Below are positions 20,634-54,711 of a DNA stretch of 64,000 nucleotides, piece by piece (position 1 is the first letter of the stretch; each line of letters starts with the position of its first letter). Both the position numbers and the translations under genes were made by a program. The notes beneath the pieces are model-generated. The model ran no database searches. It worked only from the letters and a program-made list of their open reading frames with translations, and was not told the DNA's origin. Origin of the DNA: Corallochytrium limacisporum Hawaii (Eukaryota; Protista; Pluriformea); the NCBI GenBank assembly GCA_002811645.1, contig PDIP01000064.1, positions 30,521 to 94,520 of the forward strand, in the 5' to 3' direction.

Positions 20634-20882
20634 NNNNNNNNNNNNNNNNNNNNNNNNNNNNNNNNNNNNNNNNNNNNNNNNNNNNNNNNNNNNNNNNNNN
20701 NNNNNNNNNNNNNNNNNNNNNNNNNNNNNNNNNNNNNNNNNNNNNNNNNNNNNNNNNNNNNNNNNNNNNNNNNNNNNNNNNNNNNNNNNNNNNNNNNNNN
20801 NNNNNNNNNNNNNNNNNNNNNNNNNNNNNNNNNNNNNNNNNNNNNNNNNNNNNNNNNNNNNNNNNNNNNNNNNNNNNNNNNN
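20634..20882. other. Assembly gap (N run) flanked by G-rich sequence
   Basis: Run of N in the sequence. Confidence 0.99.
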
Positions 20883-21710
20883 GGAGGAGAAGGAGGGGGG
20901 GGGAGAGGGTTCGTGGTACGAAAGGGTTGGATGACCTCGTCCAACAATCAAACGCACGCAGGTTGCAGCACCACCCCCTCCCCCCTTTTCTTCTCACTTT
21001 TCTCTCCCACCCACCCCCCAAAATTGCGCAGTACTGCGGTCACCTGAGCGGGGGGCTTAGGGTTAAAATGAAAGAGCGAGCGAGATAGGGAGAGAGGGGG
21101 GGGGGTGCGGAGAGAGGGAGAGCACGCTGCTAATACTAAATAAACAGGGTCAGCAGGTGACTCCCCCCTAACCTTCCTCTCCCTAGCCGATCCGTGCCCC
21201 AGACCTCTTGCGCACTTGCCCTACGCTACTCCGTTCAAAACCTTTCTCTCGTCTTTCTTTGTGAGGGAGAGTTTGGTTCGCAAAGAGCGTACCGGCGGGG
21301 GGGGATCCACACATTTTCTATACGCTCGTCGGAGATCCCGGGAACAGAACGAAACGGGAGATGAAGGAAGTTTCCGCCTGGGATGAGACCCGACGGTCGG
21401 GGATGGGGGGAAAAGGTGAGCGCAACGGTCAAAAGAGCAATTCTTTTGCAGTGCTGGTTTGTTTGGTCAGACAGCAAGAATATCGTTCGGTGTCCCTGAT
21501 GTCTGTGTTGTTGTTTCTGTGGCGCGACCATACAGTTGTGCATCCCTAAACACGCCGGTTTGGCTGACTGCGCACTGATCCAAGTGGCTATTTAAGTGGA
21601 CCAAGTACGGAAAAATTCACGATCAATTGTGTTTGAGGATACTTAACACGTGACTAAGGGAAAGAATAGAGGTCTTGGATTGGTCTTGTACACTCCAGAT
21701 ATTTCCCACC

Positions 21711-47444: not shown

Positions 47445-49341
47445 TGTTTCTCAATTCTAACGGCAAGAAAAGGCCGTATCCGTTCTGAAATTCTCTTACA
47501 TCACGGTCTGTCCGGGAATCCCTTAAGATTTCTTCGCCTGTCAACAGACTTTGAAATCATTACCGTCTCGATGCCTCCTATTGGTTACAGGAGCTTTCTA
47601 TGTTTTCAATACCAAGTGGAAACACTCCCGTGTCCGCATCAAAAAGCAGCTGCGATCAAAGTGCTCAGTGCGCAGCCACTCTCGTCCAGCGCAGTGACCG
47701 TGACAGGCGCGAAAAAACGAAAAACGGCAATACCAGACCTTCATTAATGATAAATTAGGGTTCAGCTATATACTTTCCCGCCCTCCGCGACCGACCGTGC
47801 CCGGGGGGACTGGCTTGCACGGCTCGGAGGGTATTGGTGCTGGAAATACAAAATTACTCAGAACGTGCAAAAACTGAACTGGAGGCCCTTCAGCCTCAGT
47901 TGGATCCAAACCTAATTCACGCTGTTGTTGTTTGGATCCGCAGAGTTCCGGTAGTGAACATACCGTTGCGTACACCTTGGTTGTCTCCTTCTCTCACAGA
48001 ACCCGCAGCGCCCTATTCCCATACTCTCTTCCCATTGGTAGTAAGACTTGCCAAAAACAGAAAATGTAGTTTCTATAGAAAACGTACCAACCTCGGCGAC
48101 TGATGATTTGGCGCCCCAGCCCCCCTCCCCAACCACCAAACCCTCCCTCACTATTCACCACCATGTTAACCCCCTCTCGGGTTTGAAATAATACCCACCT
48201 GCCCCTCTCCCTAACCAGACCTGTCACAAGGAACTACAGCAGATTCGCCTCAGTGAAGTATGTCTGTATTAACCAAAAATCTCCGCCGACCGTGTCCAGG
48301 TCGTACATTCCGAGTCGTGACTGTTGCTCTGACGGTTCCTGTTCAACCAGGGCTGCACGGTTGGTCGGTTTGTTTTGCTTTTTTTTTTTTTCGCATTCGA
48401 ACAGCTTTTGCTCATTTGAACGGTGCAATCTATGAACGCTCATAACTATTGTGTCGGTACATTCGTCAGTGTGGACAAATGGTTTCTGGTCTGTGGAAAA
48501 TGGTGTGTTCTTGTCAGTGGAACAATGTGCACCTCATATATTCACTATGCTAATTCGTCGCCATCGTGATCATTGCATGTGTCGGGAAATGTTGGGTTTT
48601 GTTCAGTCCCAGTGCCCCATGTAGCAATCACCGGCATTTTCTTTCCACCGCCGCCAGTATGTTGTCGGTGAGGAGAGTATGTTGCATCTCCTGCTCTCTG
48701 GCAACGTCGAGGGCACCATGTCGTAGTTGGCAGAGGAGACGAATGGCGTACCGCAGCAGTGGAGAAACAAGTGCCCGAAAATGTCGGCGGGTCATTCGTC
48801 GTAGGGCTTGCGTCTGCTTAACTGTTGGGCCAGCCTTTATTGCTCAGGCTTTCCTTGAGCGATCGTTCGATGGTGATCTGGTCGAACATATTGGAGGAAT
48901 TGGGCACACAATGCCCATGCGTACATTGGCTATAGGTCAAAGGGACCTACGTGCGAGTTGTGTCATTCGAATTCCGATTCAATGTTGGAGTGTGGCCGGT
49001 GCGATGTTTTCATTCTTTCTGAAAAAGCGAGCTCCCCGACTATGCGAGTTGGATTCGTTTTGGCCCCAACCACCTTACACACACGGATTGGCCGGAAATA
49101 TGAGTAGCCGAGCATGCCGCGAATAACAAGGGCACGGATTCACCATCTCTACAGTTTAGAGCAGAATGATCCTTCTCTGCACACTTGCGTGCATTGTATG
49201 TTCTGAATATATGCTGTATTAGTGTCCGTTATACCTGGCTATTTTGGGTGCGATAGGACGAAATCAAAATCCCTGACAAGTACATAATCCACATGGTAGG
49301 AAGAGCACGGTTCTCCGGTGCAACTCGAACTATTCAACGCC

Positions 49342-50040
49342 ATGCCTAACAAAGAAGTTGAGGGAGCAGTTAATACATGGGACGTAAACCTGTGCGAGAC
49401 CTGCGTTAAGGTCCCTGCATATTGGTGTTGCTCGTTCTGGACGCCATGCTGTTTTGTGTGCCGTCAACGTATTCGAATTTTGGGTGGTCCAAACGTTTGG
49501 CGCGATAACTACGTCTGCTGTGGCGGTATCTGCGGTAACTGCTGCAAGGCGTGCGGTAATCTCGACAAGAAGTGCCCGGATGTCTGTCTATGCATCGAGA
49601 GCTTCTTCTGCTTCTGGTTCGCCACCAGCGGTAACCGGTTCCTCCTGCAGTCGACCTACAAGATCAGGAATACTCCTCTCGAAAACTGTCTGCTAATCTT
49701 TGCCTGCATTTGCTCCTGGGTCCGCTGCATTGCATCATTCTTCATTGATCTGCCGCAGGAACTCGAGTTCCTCATCGATATCCTGTACGCCATGCTGGCC
49801 AGCTGTATGTTGTCCCAGCAGGAGGCTGAGATTGATTTCCAGACTGGCACTGCAGGTGAGATCTATTGCTTCACGCCATACAAGAACCGTGTCCACGAGA
49901 GACAGCCTCAACCGCAGCCTGCTGCTGCTGGTCCACCCGGCTACCCCGGACCTCCCGGCGGTGCTCCTCCACCTGGCTACGGTGACCCTAATTCTCAGGG
50001 CGGCTACCCGCCCCAGGGCTACCCTGCGCCCAAGAATTGA
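49342..50040 (+). CDS. PLAC8-family cysteine-rich protein with a Pro/Gly/Tyr-rich C-terminal tail
   Basis: W...LC...WCCSFWTPCCF and CxxxLSQQEAEI pattern; GYPGPPGG/GYPPQGYP tail. Confidence 0.8.
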   Translation: MPNKEVEGAVNTWDVNLCETCVKVPAYWCCSFWTPCCFVCRQRIRILGGPNVWRDNYVCCGGICGNCCKACGNLDKKCPDVCLCIESFFCFWFATSGNRFLLQSTYKIRNTPLENCLLIFACICSWVRCIASFFIDLPQELEFLIDILYAMLASCMLSQQEAEIDFQTGTAGEIYCFTPYKNRVHERQPQPQPAAAGPPGYPGPPGGAPPPGYGDPNSQGGYPPQGYPAPKN

Positions 50041-50245
50041 TGAAAGTGTGACAATGAAAAAGGTCAATTATAATTCATCGTCAACGTAGTGAGTATTCAT
50101 ACTGTTGTTTGGTCGGGAGCTGACGGGTTTTGACAAGTATATTGATAAGCAGTTTCCAGTTCCTGAGGCTTGAAACTACAATAACTTGTAAATACATGAT
50201 TCTGCAAAGGACAGCTACTATGTAATCTTCTTTAGTTTATTGTCA

Positions 50246-50722
50246 TTACGCTGCTCGCGGCCCTATACTGGGCATGGCGGATACCAAAGTCTTCAGGTCG
50301 TCTAAATGCGAACTGATGGCCTGCTCTACTATGGAAGCTGTGTACGACGAGACTGCGCTGGGCTGAGTGACACAGTGGACCAACACACTCTCCTGCTTGT
50401 TCTGTAAATAGAACAATGACGTAATCGTCCGATTGCCACGAATGTGTGCTGCTTGCATGGTTCTAGAATTGGATATTCCTGACATGAATCCTTCCAATGA
50501 CGTGTGCAGCAACCGAATAACTGGGGCGAAGTCCTCATCAGCCTCCAGTTCTGCATTCGTTTTGGTGGATCTGGCCACAATTTCTGGCTGGTCTCCTACA
50601 ATGACATATGCACTCTTCCTTCCCGGGGGATACGGTTCTAACAAGGCGTCCAGCGTCCTTTGTATCTGCTTTCTAACCGCTTTGGGGCCCTTCTTGCTCC
50701 GAGAGCACAGGCTTGGTGCCAT
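50246..50722 (-). CDS. Small hypothetical protein (possibly profilin/roadblock/longin-like alpha-beta fold)
   Basis: 158-aa ATG ORF with a helix-strand-strand-helix-strands-helix pattern; divergent from the snoRNA-host/KIN17 unit. Confidence 0.55.
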   Translation of the reverse strand: MAPSLCSRSKKGPKAVRKQIQRTLDALLEPYPPGRKSAYVIVGDQPEIVARSTKTNAELEADEDFAPVIRLLHTSLEGFMSGISNSRTMQAAHIRGNRTITSLFYLQNKQESVLVHCVTQPSAVSSYTASIVEQAISSHLDDLKTLVSAMPSIGPRAA

Positions 50723-51306
50723 GCTTTGGTACTGACTTACAAACGTCTGTGGTGAGAGCACTATGTCATAGGTCCTCTTCTCCCCAAAGAGCCTTTCGTC
50801 AATGTCCCTCTAGGTATTTGCATAAACACATAGAATTAAAATGTCATCGATGGCCAATTTGAAATACTCTCACAGCCCTTCGCACGGAGTCATTTGGCCA
50901 CTGAGAAACGACGGTGTGTCAGTTGCGGGTGACTCTGCGGGGCCGTTCGGACGTCAGCCCCAATTGTTGCCGCCCCGGGGTGGGGGGGGGTTTCCCGCGC
51001 GCAGAATTTGACAGCAATCCGAGGGTGGCTGCTCATGTTGAGAGGGGAGCCCTCCCTTCCTTCCGCCCTCAGAAGAAACAGCGCCAGGCGGGACCGCGTG
51101 GCAGACAATTTTGTCAAAGTTTACAGGCCAATTGGCTTATTCCTTCATCAATGGGTAACTTTCTTTAGACGACAGACATAATGAATCTCCTTGGTATTTA
51201 GAGGGATGACAAAAATATGCGGCCATACCGGTTAGCATCGGAGAAGCATTCTCGAGCGTGGCGCTGGCGTTACGCAACGGGTTTGAAACAGTTTGCTTGT
51301 TAAAGA

Positions 51307-51554
51307 GTAGGTAACTGAATCCGATACGACGTGGTCAATGATACGGTGATGACTTCTATCCTTCAAAGTTCTATGAAGTCCACTTGAAGTTCTAAAGAGT
51401 CATTCTTCAGAATTTCGCCGGGCGCTTATACCTGATTCATATTTGTCATAGTTACACTGATGTGGTTGTTGACCCGAAACATACCCGGTTTCAAAATTTG
51501 TGAACTTAATTTACTGACTCTGGCTTATCTTTCTTGCTCTGTTATTGAAATTAG
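51307..51554 (+). other. Spliceosomal intron 1 of the snoRNA-host/KIN17 leader
   Basis: Donor GTAGGT (51307) or GTAACT (51311); branch TACTGAC at 51512-51518; pyrimidine tract; TAG at 51554. Confidence 0.7.
51341..51463 (+). ncRNA. SNORD46: Box C/D snoRNA, SNORD46/snR63-like (LSU rRNA Am2256, yeast numbering)
   Basis: Box C GTGATGA at 51346-51352; guide GTCATAGTTAC at 51445-51455 is antisense to LSU GUAACUAUGAC; box D CTGA at 51457-51460; D+5 selects the second A of GUAAC; flanking stem ggtcaatgat/gttgttgacc. Confidence 0.85.
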
Positions 51555-51631
51555 ATGTAAATCGTGCGTGCTGACGGTCTTCCCGAAGTCTATGATTTGT
51601 AAGACGATCGGATCAGCCATTCTCGCCAACG

Positions 51632-51890
51632 GTAAGTAATTGCATTACTCAAGTCCAGGAGGAGCTGGAAGGGATGATTCGATGATGAAAGAACTTTTTC
51701 TGTCAATCCACTGAAGAGGGCGCACTACCCACAATTAGCGCGTGCGGGCGTTCTTCACTGTTTATCCAAAAAGTGTATTCATACTGCCTGAAGTTTCATC
51801 CCTTTCTGGTCCTGTCCGGGTTCATTCTTCAAGGGATTTCTTGACCGCTAACATTATCTACATTCAGTCTTTTCCTTTTTTTCTTCTTAG
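51632..51890 (+). other. Spliceosomal intron 2 of the snoRNA-host/KIN17 leader
   Basis: GTAAGT at 51632; GCTAAC at 51847-51852; long U/C tract; TAG at 51890. Confidence 0.85.
51677..51795 (+). ncRNA. Dual-guide box C/D snoRNA (18S Um1288-equivalent and LSU Um2729-equivalent)
   Basis: Box C ATGATGA at 51682-51688; TCTGTCAATCC-A-CTGA (D' at 51711) is antisense to SSU GGAUUGACAGA; TGTATTCATACTG-C-CTGA (D at 51788) is antisense to LSU CAGURUGAAUACA; terminal stem ggaagggatga/tcatccctttc. Confidence 0.85.
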
Positions 51891-51957
51891 CTAGCCACAC
51901 GAACACTGGTCTTTACGAATTGGAGAGACATTCAGTTCGACACTAGTGTCAGTTCTA

Positions 51958-52191
51958 GTAGGTATTTCTGTTATACACCAGTGCTGGTTGGGCGTTTACT
52001 GCAGCTGATGAGTTTTTGTTGTCGCCCCAGTCTGAACTACACTGTTGAGTGACCTTGTCCATACAGCCAATTTACGGACAGACTGACCTCGTCCTACCAG
52101 CACTCTTTGAATCCTTAGTGTTCTACGCAAGAACTTGGGCTTACTAACCTCCAAGAACACATCAACATAGCTCTTTCTTTTTCCTATTCAG
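51958..52191 (+). other. Spliceosomal intron 3 of the snoRNA-host/KIN17 leader
   Basis: Donor GTAGGT (51958) or GTATTT (51962); perfect TACTAAC at 52142-52148; pyrimidine tract; CAG at 52191, 39 nt before the KIN17 ATG. Confidence 0.8.
52001..52089 (+). ncRNA. SNORD31: Box C/D snoRNA, SNORD31/snR67-like (LSU P-loop Gm2619, yeast numbering)
   Basis: Box C TGATGA at 52006-52011; guide TGTCGCCCCAGT-CTGA (D' at 52032) is antisense to LSU CUGGGGCGG; C'-like TGTTGA; box D CTGA at 52083; terminal stem agtgctggt/accagcact. Confidence 0.85.
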
Positions 52192-52230
52192 ATGCACTAC
52201 CTCTTGTCTCGGTGATCGTCAATTGACACA

Positions 52231-53019
52231 ATGGGGCGAGCAAACACCAACAGAAAGAAGCAGAGTCGCGGCCTGAAACAGGTACGCTTTTACTGTCAGA
52301 TCTGCGAGAAGCAATGCTCGGATGCAAATGGATACAAATGCCATTTGGCTAGCCCATCCCACAAACGGCAAATGGAGCTTGTTCAACTGAAACCTGAGCA
52401 ATACGCAGAAAGGTTCTCCAACCAGTTCCTCCAGGGATTTCTTGAGGTCTTAGAGGAAAACTTTGGAACAAAGCCTGTCGATGCAAACAAAGTGTATAAC
52501 CTATTCGTCAGTGACCCTGGTCATGTTCATATGAATGCGACGCAATGGAGCGGGCTTGGGCAATTTGTTCGCTGGCTCGGCAAACACGGGTATGCAACAT
52601 TGACCAAGACGGACGCATTCTATGATATTACCTATATTCCCAGCGGAGACCCTGAGGAGGAAGATGACACGTCTGGTCCAATGTCTCGAAATCACCAAGA
52701 ACAGGAACTTGCCAAAGACGCGAGCCGACAAGATCGACTGCTTGCGAAACAGATCAAGACTGGTTGGAAGAGGCAAACATCATCTAAAGTTGCTGGCAAC
52801 GATAGGGATGCAAAGGTGTCGTCACTTGAGAGGGCCCGTGCTTCGGATCCCTCAGCGGCAGAACAGAAGATTGCTATTACACTGGGATCTTCGGATGCTA
52901 CTACCAGTCGCAGTGCGGATGACAAGAAAGGCCAGAAGCGTCGCGCAGTCGCTCTTGGGGACAATGTTGACGCCACGGATGTCAATCCACACAAAAAGAA
53001 GCCAGTCTCTTTGGGATAA
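52231..53019 (+). CDS. KIN17: KIN17/Rts2-like zinc-finger and winged-helix protein lacking C-terminal KOW domains
   Basis: GLKQVRFYCQICEKQCSDANGYKCHLASPSHKRQM and HVHMNATQWSGLGQFVRWLGK motifs. Confidence 0.88.
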   Translation: MGRANTNRKKQSRGLKQVRFYCQICEKQCSDANGYKCHLASPSHKRQMELVQLKPEQYAERFSNQFLQGFLEVLEENFGTKPVDANKVYNLFVSDPGHVHMNATQWSGLGQFVRWLGKHGYATLTKTDAFYDITYIPSGDPEEEDDTSGPMSRNHQEQELAKDASRQDRLLAKQIKTGWKRQTSSKVAGNDRDAKVSSLERARASDPSAAEQKIAITLGSSDATTSRSADDKKGQKRRAVALGDNVDATDVNPHKKKPVSLG

Positions 53020-53091
53020 GCAATGGGGCACATCAAATAAGGACACTGTACAGTCCACATTAAAGAATCAGAATCCACCATGTCTCTGGGT

Positions 53092-54711
53092 TTAATTTCC
53101 TTTATGTTTTAAGGGATTGCGGCGAGCTTTTCCTCGGTCCTGTGTATCCGGTTCTTTTCCCTTCGCATCCAACCGCGGGGAGGACACGAGTTCCGACTGG
53201 CTCAGACCGGGCACCTCATCGACTGTCCGAGCAGTGTCCTGCCGTTGAGTGCCCATGTGGGCAGCACCTGATGCAGGACCTAATGGCAGGGTCATATGCA
53301 GTGCATCTGTGTTCAAGGGATACAAGCCATTCATGGCTACGGCATTGGTTGATGTGCCCAGGCCGGTGGCTGTTCGAGACGCATTTGTTGTGGCATCTGC
53401 AGCCAAATTGACGTTCGAAAGAGATATCACGCGTAGGCTAGCCTCCGCTGCGTCTCTTTCTGCAGTGATGCGGCGGATCTCTCCGTTGGCTTTTAGAAGT
53501 GCATTCATGGCATCATGGTAAAGATCGCCGTCTGCCAATGACGGACTACGGGCCAGATCCCTGGTCGTGGATCCAAGGTCTGCCTGCGCCAAATCGAAAT
53601 CTGATTGCTGTCGGCTCAAGGCACGTTTCAATTCCGATTTTGTGCGTTCAGCAGTTTGCAGTGCTTCCGCTGCTTCAATGGCCGCAGCGTCTGCATCTGC
53701 CTGGGCCGCATAGAGGCTCTCACGGGACTGCTGGGCCTCCGATTTGACTTTCAAATAGCGACTAAAGAGTTTTCCGTACGAATTCAAAATCACGCTTACG
53801 TCGTCTGCAATATTCTTCAGTGCGTGATCTTCAGCTCTGAACGCCGTAAGATCCGTTTGCCAGCCCTGAAGGTCCCGGAGGACACGATCAACCTGCACAG
53901 GGCTACTTTGTACATCTTTCTGCCTGCTTTCCATCACGGATGCTCGCGACTTAGTGACCAGTTTTTGAAGTAGGGGCAGACTCTTTCGGGCTGCCTCCAT
54001 CCGTGCTCCAGCCCGATCTGAATTGACCTGGCTTTCCTCCACAGCCATGGTCAATCTATGGACATCGTCCTCCAACTGCCGTTGACGAAGCTGGGCGAGA
54101 TCTCGGTCTCGGACGGCCTGCTCACACCGGTTCTGGACGTCCTTCAGAACCTTCTGTGTAGAAGAAATATCATGTTTCAATCGCTGAACCTCACGCGACT
54201 GTGATCCTCCGGGTCTGCTTTGGTTCTGTGGCTGGGACTGCTTCAATTCTCTCAGCTCAGATTCCAAAGACTCAATCTTGTCATTGGCCCAGTCCCAGTC
54301 GGCCTTGCTCACACGATCCGCCTTCTTATGGCCCACTTGATTGTTCTTAGCTACATCAAGCTCTTCCTCTAGCTCTGAAATGCGCTTAACCGCCTTGTGC
54401 AACCGATCTACTACCTTCTCGAGATACAGGCTATCGTCCTTGGTGCTCGAGCTCCTGCGGGGCTTTTGAATTGACTTCGGTGTTGAAATATTAACCCGGT
54501 TGCTTCTACTGGCATTGCTAGGTGCCGAACTCTTATGTTCAGCGCTGCTAAGGATGTTGTGGCATAGATCCACTGATTCGTGTGCATATATAATACTGTT
54601 ATACAGGTCTTCAATCTCGTGCTCGAGACTCCGATCGACCCGATCAGAGACGGCCATTGGTCCCGTACTATCTTTGTTCACTATGTCATCACTGTGTCTC
54701 ACATTGTTCAC
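53092..54711 (-). CDS. Hypothetical coiled-coil protein (539 aa)
   Basis: Long ATG ORF, heptad-rich; no family recognised. Confidence 0.75.
   Translation of the reverse strand: MNNVRHSDDIVNKDSTGPMAVSDRVDRSLEHEIEDLYNSIIYAHESVDLCHNILSSAEHKSSAPSNASRSNRVNISTPKSIQKPRRSSSTKDDSLYLEKVVDRLHKAVKRISELEEELDVAKNNQVGHKKADRVSKADWDWANDKIESLESELRELKQSQPQNQSRPGGSQSREVQRLKHDISSTQKVLKDVQNRCEQAVRDRDLAQLRQRQLEDDVHRLTMAVEESQVNSDRAGARMEAARKSLPLLQKLVTKSRASVMESRQKDVQSSPVQVDRVLRDLQGWQTDLTAFRAEDHALKNIADDVSVILNSYGKLFSRYLKVKSEAQQSRESLYAAQADADAAAIEAAEALQTAERTKSELKRALSRQQSDFDLAQADLGSTTRDLARSPSLADGDLYHDAMNALLKANGEIRRITAERDAAEASLRVISLSNVNLAADATTNASRTATGLGTSTNAVAMNGLYPLNTDALHMTLPLGPASGAAHMGTQRQDTARTVDEVPGLSQSELVSSPRLDAKGKEPDTQDRGKARRNPLKHKGN

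Follow-up and report, generated by a model that had tools for sequence, protein, structure and literature searches.

The coding sequences of Corallochytrium limacisporum contain about 0.0 introns per kb, and the organism has lost exon-junction-complex, NMD and SR factors (PMC5560861). A row of three intron-like units directly upstream of a KIN17 gene in this genome raises the questions of whether these units are spliced, to which transcript they belong, and what they carry that could have kept them in place.

Gene structure upstream of KIN17

By reading the sequence over 50900-52700 and running a motif script, we located three intron-like units on the plus strand at positions 51307-52191 of the window, i.e. 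the whole 64-kb stretch of DNA analyzed here (Table 1). A pyrimidine tract precedes the acceptor in all three, and the distance from branch to acceptor is 37, 39 and 44 nt in introns 1, 2 and 3, respectively. The first-pass annotation had described donors, branches, pyrimidine tracts and YAG acceptors at these coordinates, with exons of about 70 nt in between, a last acceptor 39 nt before the KIN17 ATG, and nearly all coding sequences of the window uninterrupted. Each of these points holds: the signals were all re-found, the two internal exons measure 77 and 67 nt, the final acceptor (52191) lies 39 nt upstream of the ATG at 52231, and the large ORFs of the window, up to 1890 codons, are uninterrupted.

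The KIN17 ORF consists of 262 codons and matches the Pfam domains WH_KIN17 (2.9e-28) and KIN17 zinc finger (3e-17), while no other notable coding content was found on either strand of 51307-52230. The snoRNA cluster of the KIN17 leader is single-copy in the 24.1-Mb genome, and no second contig encoding the same KIN17 protein was found. When relatives of KIN17 were sought for synteny, a word-indexed search returned the query alone and an exhaustive search gave none above 52% identity. On the upstream side, the neighboring transcript contig (49500-50828) extends approximately 780 nt past the sole sizeable plus-strand ORF (49318-50040) and spans a minus-strand ORF (50246-50761); no Pfam domain was matched by any of these ORFs.

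Table 1. Features of the KIN17 leader, predicted guide interactions, and further C/D RNAs of the genome.
Feature	Position	Strand	Description
Promoter region and predicted exon 1	50829..51306	+	Predicted; contigs of the upstream gene stop at 50820/50828
Intron 1 (predicted, 248 nt)	51307..51554	+	GTAGGT donor, TACTGAC at 51512, TAG acceptor ending 51554
snoRNA 1 (predicted), including outer stem	51334..51474	+	C box GUGAUGA 51346-52; D' AUGA 51373-76 (degenerate); D box CUGA 51457-60; stem GGTCAA/TTGACC, 6 bp; double guide
snoRNA 1 D' guide	51360-72		13 Watson-Crick bp; LSU, C of GAGAACUUUG; yeast C1437 / U24 site
snoRNA 1 D guide			11 Watson-Crick bp; LSU, second A of GUAAC; yeast A2256 / snR63 / SNORD46 site
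Exon 2, 77 nt	51555..51631	+	Contig-covered; 3' end set by joints
Intron 2 (confirmed, 259 nt)	51632..51890	+	GTAAGT donor, GCTAAC at 51847, TAG acceptor; joints in X1
snoRNA 2 (predicted)	51671..51803	+	C box AUGAUGA 51682-88; D' 51711-14; D box CUGA 51788-91; stem GGGATGA/TCATCCC, 7+ bp, extends further; double guide
snoRNA 2 D' guide			11 Watson-Crick bp; SSU, first U of GGAUUGACAG; yeast U1269 / snR55 site
snoRNA 2 D guide			13 Watson-Crick bp; LSU, U of CAGUAUGAAUACA; yeast U2729 / snR51 site
Exon 3, 67 nt	51891..51957	+	Joints on both sides
Intron 3 (confirmed, 234 nt)	51958..52191	+	GTAGGT donor, TACTAAC at 52142, CAG acceptor; joints in X1 and X2
snoRNA 3 (predicted), including outer stem	51981..52106	+	C box (C)UGAUGA 52005/6-52011; D' 52032-35; D box CUGA 52083-86; stem AGTGCTGGT/ACCAGCACT, 9 bp
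snoRNA 3 D' guide			12 bp (2 G-U); LSU, fifth nucleotide of ACUGGGGCGGCA; yeast G2619 / snR67 / SNORD31 site
Last exon	52192..53053	+	39-nt leader, KIN17 CDS 52231-53019, short 3' UTR; Pfam and X1 contig
U14 homologue	G000:C230:48843-51964	-	56 bits (Rfam cut-off 64); 13-bp guide on SSU C414, 12-bp domain A; GTAGGT donor
snR52-type RNA	G000:C47:37090-37105	-	SSU A420-equivalent guide; predicted GTAAGT ... GACTAAC ... ACAG unit; D box to branch 57 nt
snR75-type RNA	G000:C239:235717-235732	-	LSU G2288-equivalent guide; behind GTAAGT

Splicing and the host transcript

The transcript data were assembled contigs of the poly(A) type from two public 2015 runs (X1 and X2), representing two samples from two studies, and these were compared over 49500-54500. 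Both runs are recorded as 'RNA? (a guess)'; we take them to be RNA from their exact intron-shaped joints and from the coverage gaps between genes. One of the two samples carries scattered substitutions relative to the window. The X2 strain has 14 substitutions in 2.7 kb of flanking genes (49500-50828 and 53120-54500). Over intron 2, exon 3 and KIN17 (51602-52918, 1.08 kb) it has none, and differs there only by the loss of one nucleotide from the T-run at 51876.

Introns 2 and 3 are fixed to the base. The GT..AG joint 51631^51891, at which intron 2 is removed exactly, is found in contigs of X1, and the GT..AG joint 51957^52192 is found in contigs of both runs. Both junctions had been predicted before any transcript was consulted. 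A shallower joint in X1, 51631^51867, uses an alternative acceptor of intron 2 after the AG at 51865-66, and intron 2 is also retained in some contigs of X1 and X2. The alternative 3' splice site is the first AG past the branch and makes exon 3 24 nt longer. Of the three introns originally proposed, two are thereby established by exact joints, and the first stands by its sequence signals (see below).

Beyond 51957^52192, the contig runs on across the KIN17 ORF and reaches 53053 in X1 and 52918 in X2. Contig depth is zero across 52005-52171 inside intron 3, meaning that no transcript is seen to enter the KIN17 exon from within the intron. Since the contigs join exon 3 to the KIN17 exon, the KIN17 mRNA is the host transcript and the snoRNA host is its leader. 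This is what had been proposed for the region, and the X1 contig that spans exon 3 through the ORF to 53053 bears it out.

In fungi and mammals, the classic hosts of several snoRNAs do not code for protein (PMC3596301, PMC2780460), and the leader is rich in upstream AUGs, as could be expected if the snoRNAs belonged to a noncoding host of their own, of the UHG/GAS5 type, that terminated upstream of KIN17, with KIN17 transcribed from its own promoter. We regard such an arrangement as very improbable, as both runs have a single contig that leads from exon 3 across the joint at 52192 and on through the ORF, 52005-52171 is devoid of contigs and no transcript start is seen inside intron 3, and the 39 nt between the last acceptor and the ATG are too little for a terminator plus a promoter. 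A host of this noncoding type would lack a long ORF, and was rejected because splicing here yields an RNA with the 262-codon ORF and its two KIN17 Pfam domains.

One box C/D RNA per intron

Every one of the three introns contains one sequence with a C box (RUGAUGA) and a D box (CUGA), and terminal stems close all three RNAs in minimum-free-energy folds. That there is exactly one C/D RNA with a terminal stem in each intron had already been noted, and the boxes and stems were found at the sites given. Intronic C/D snoRNAs are processed best when they lie roughly 50-70 nt ahead of the branch. Measured from the end of the D box to the branch A, the distance is 57, 60 and 61 nt for snoRNAs 1, 2 and 3, respectively, so that all three introns have the favored spacing; the earlier estimate of about 50-60 nt comes close to these measurements.

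When C/D boxes, an rRNA guide and a stem were required together, a scan of the 64-kb window identified no RNAs other than those of the KIN17 leader, compared with a single match in total in 20 shuffled windows. These C/D RNAs are therefore not a product of chance. Together, the boxes, stems and spacing support the reading of the three units as intron-encoded box C/D guides, which are predicted to accumulate as stable small RNAs.

Pairing of the guides with the ribosomal RNA

The rDNA of the organism itself was located by short conserved LSU and SSU patterns and then taken whole (contig C219). Of the six guide elements, five form duplexes of 11-13 bp with this rRNA directly beside a D or D' box, longer than the 10 bp required of a guide, and in each of the five the fifth nucleotide falls on the equivalent of a residue that is methylated in yeast (Table 1). 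The antisense elements of 11-13 nt initially reported at conserved 2'-O-methylation sites were thus recovered against the organism's own rRNA, with pairings of 11, 13, 11, 13 and 12 bp; complementarity to that rRNA is present for five of the six guides.

In yeast, the sites Am2256, Cm1437, Um1269, Um2729 and Gm2619 are served by snR63, U24, snR55, snR51 and snR67, respectively (PMC5199042). Equivalence to these sites was set by sequence context, and for the three 3' LSU sites by spacing as well: from the A target to the G target and on to the U target there are 361 and 110 nt in the own rDNA, compared with 363 and 110 nt in yeast. The context match at C1437 is in part provisional. On the sense strand of contig C219, the five predicted target nucleotides are at 1917, 4735, 5513, 5874 and 5984.

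The remaining element, the D guide of snoRNA 3 (52064-52082, approximately 19 nt upstream of the CUGA at 52083), is complementary to no part of the SSU, 5.8S/ITS or LSU of C219, and may be an orphan or act on a different RNA, for instance an snRNA. Within the 24.1-Mb genome, the snoRNA 1 guide together with its D box is unique, as is the D' guide of snoRNA 2 beside its box.

Comparison with Rfam

No matches were obtained with Rfam at gathering thresholds over the entire window, and an E-value scan of the same sequence returned no additional snoRNA. Below threshold, snoRNA 1 matches SNORD46 (RF00218) partially with 16.5 bits, snoRNA 2 matches snoR14 (RF01280) with 16.4 bits, and snoRNA 3 matches SNORD31 (RF00089) with 21.5 bits, each against a gathering score of 40, as well as snoU31b (RF01285) with 22.9 bits. 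The leader RNAs fall in the range of 16-23 bits, well short of the gathering scores of these families, 37-40 bits. Such matches are weak but concordant: the guide elements agree fully or almost fully with the family consensus (20/20 over the SNORD46 guide and its D box) and the same rRNA sites are served, with no detectable similarity beyond boxes and guides. The leader RNAs also differ from these families in that two of them bear a second guide, which in yeast belongs to another family. The family names first assigned, e.g. SNORD46 and SNORD31, are hence appropriate as equivalents in target site, but not as memberships at Rfam thresholds (16.4-22.9 bits).

Elsewhere in the window, a hairpin at 20879-21007, probably no more than a long inverted repeat, gave sub-threshold matches to Rfam microRNA precursors (mir-483, 37.7 bits versus a cut-off of 60).

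The low Rfam scores of all three RNAs, and the fact that single 11-mers complementary to rDNA are not unusual in shuffled sequence, could be taken to mean that the C/D-like motifs are accidental, or decayed pseudo-snoRNAs, within ordinary UTR introns. This is scarcely credible when five guides directly adjoin D or D' boxes and put their fifth nucleotide on known conserved methylation sites, when C box, D box and closing stem are all present in each RNA, and when the combined scan yields so little from shuffled windows.

Other C/D RNAs in the genome

Four further guide-verified C/D RNAs were found elsewhere in the genome, each located behind a GTRRGT donor; the introns around them are predictions from sequence. 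One is a homologue of U14 with both rRNA-pairing domains intact, and just upstream of it, on the same contig (C230), another guide C/D RNA lies in a GTAAGT-to-TAG unit. This pair looks like a two-intron noncoding host. The distance from U14 to the nearest consensus branch is about 143 nt, far longer than in the KIN17 leader. The other two are of the snR52 and snR75 types (Table 1), of which the snR52-type RNA appears to interrupt a coding region.

Taken together with the three RNAs of the KIN17 leader, a consensus donor is situated at most 110 nt upstream in 7/7 guide-verified C/D RNAs, compared with 2/35 chance pattern matches, the seven being a small sample in which the four additional RNAs were found by function. 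A genome-wide pattern built on geometry (C box, gap, D box, gap, branch) gave 67 matches versus 33 in the control, with an rRNA guide in 0/30 of the first loci, and was on that account discarded as unusable for detecting C/D RNAs. Guide patterns for the equivalents of LSU G2815 and A2640 had no matches in the genome, and the pattern for SSU A541 gave no convincing C/D RNA. The upstream regions of three snoRNA hosts share no words beyond chance. The word AAAGTTTAC occurs upstream of the donors of both the KIN17 host (51118-51131) and the U14 host, one common 9-mer being about the chance expectation.

The first intron

Intron 1 calls for separate treatment, as no contig of either run covers 50836-51435 and exon 1 is hence uncovered. 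The sole contig in this region, from X1 (51436-51631), starts within snoRNA 1 and runs unspliced over the predicted acceptor. If only introns 2 and 3 were real, snoRNA 1 would reside in the first exon or at the 5' end of the primary transcript, or have its own promoter, and be freed by endonuclease and exonuclease without splicing. This would account for the missing joint and exon-1 coverage, and for a contig that continues unbroken, with a depth like that of exon 2, from 51436 past the acceptor at 51554/5. We nevertheless hold it to be unlikely. The donor hexamer of intron 1, GTAGGT, is that of intron 3; a TACTGAC branch is placed 37 nt from a TAG acceptor and is accompanied by a pyrimidine tract; and the 57 nt from D box to branch compare well with the 60 and 61 nt of the proven introns. 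The donors upstream of all seven guide-verified C/D RNAs, against 2/35 chance sites, point in the same direction. The unspliced contig is itself weak evidence against splicing of intron 1, because a short first exon is easily clipped in assembly and goes missing from contigs, and because contigs retaining the proven intron 2 exist as well. Given a donor hexamer equal to that of intron 3, its branch motif and its spacing of 57 nt, intron 1 is probably genuine, if less assuredly so than its two neighbors.

Upstream AUGs in the leader

When the leader exons are read singly, exon 2 starts with ATG-TAA and has a second upstream AUG at 51592 whose frame is still open at the exon end, exon 3 is devoid of AUGs, and the last exon starts with a seven-codon uORF (52192-52215). 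The leader thus contains at least three upstream AUGs, and the KIN17 AUG itself is in good context. Judging from this arrangement, the uORFs probably hold the output of KIN17 protein below the level of transcription.

Proposed route from transcript to guide RNA

The scheme that we consider very probable as a whole comprises an RNA polymerase II leader with three snoRNA introns, KIN17 as the host, and five predicted methylations. A single transcript would start between approximately 50830 and 51306 and consist of three short 5'-UTR introns followed by the intron-less KIN17 ORF, with each intron encoding one box C/D snoRNA. The closing stem would bring the C/D kink-turn together, and the box C/D proteins are expected to assemble there, favored by a D box 57-61 nt before the branch A, a spacing conducive to splicing-dependent assembly of C/D snoRNPs. 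Splicing would then free a lariat, to be debranched and trimmed by exonucleases back to the snoRNP. Using yeast numbering, snoRNA 1 is predicted to direct 2'-O-methylation of LSU C1437 and A2256, snoRNA 2 that of SSU U1269 and LSU U2729, and snoRNA 3 that of LSU G2619. The spliced product would be the KIN17 mRNA, the translation of which is probably throttled by the upstream AUGs.

Relation to known snoRNA hosts

Multi-intron hosts with a single snoRNA in each intron are textbook knowledge for fungi and animals, and tandem introns with one C/D snoRNA each and short exons in between are the standard for fungal snoRNA clusters and mammalian UHG/GAS5-type genes (PMC3596301, PMC2780460). The KIN17 leader resembles these in having several short introns in a row and short, poorly coding exons, in the constant spacing between the snoRNA and the 3' splice region (PMC3596301, PMC2780460), and in the alternative splicing of the host, here represented by an alternative acceptor. 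The fungal and mammalian hosts have little coding potential, whereas here a full KIN17 ORF is present and the snoRNA introns are 5'-UTR introns. The lineage also differs, being that of a holozoan protist, as do the guide combinations, with the U24 site and the snR63 site served by one RNA and the snR55 site and the snR51 site by another. Such combinations fit the reshuffling of guide elements between snoRNAs that has been reported in Neurospora (among PMC3596301, PMC2780460 and PMC8476143). What is particular here is accordingly a protein-coding 5' UTR as host, a new lineage, and an intronic route kept in an intron-poor genome. Among the papers searched, none pairs Corallochytrium with snoRNA.

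Intron-poor fungi likewise retain snoRNA-bearing introns after near-total intron loss, namely in RPL7 (snR39-59) and NOG2 (snR191) (PMC8476143). Those are single introns at conserved positions in the coding regions of ribosome-biogenesis genes, whereas the KIN17 leader has three UTR introns in a gene without a known ribosome role. Several guides per transcript are also found in the S. cerevisiae units snR41-snR70-snR51 and snR67-snR53, which serve two of the sites predicted here, U2729 and G2619. The polycistronic snoRNA units of S. cerevisiae are cut by RNase III. Saccharomyces, with an equally intron-poor genome, has turned its clusters into unspliced primary transcripts (PMC3596301), in contrast to the genome studied here, which kept the splicing-dependent route.

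A possible reason for the persistence of the introns

It is plausible that introns persist at the KIN17 leader because they carry snoRNAs, which agrees both with the 7/7 sample and with the literature. A broader version of this idea is that most of the surviving spliceosomal introns are snoRNA carriers in noncoding hosts and UTRs, that the splicing-independent, RNase III-type route of Saccharomyces never evolved, and that snoRNA release is a main reason why the spliceosome was kept; we put this forward tentatively, as a rather doubtful generalization. KIN17 protein is linked to the spliceosome. If the broader idea were true, the three guides in the KIN17 leader would tie the supply of guide RNA to a splicing factor's own mRNA.

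For the annotation of the genome, the analysis corrects the KIN17 gene model to four exons, the first of them predicted, and yields three previously unannotated, predicted snoRNAs together with five predicted rRNA methylation sites. The locus adds a case outside the fungi in which introns of a near-intronless genome carry snoRNAs, with an outcome opposite to that in Saccharomyces: there the clusters shed their introns, and here they stayed intronic. It thereby supports the idea that the production of guide RNAs can keep introns, and hence the spliceosome, under selection after massive intron loss.
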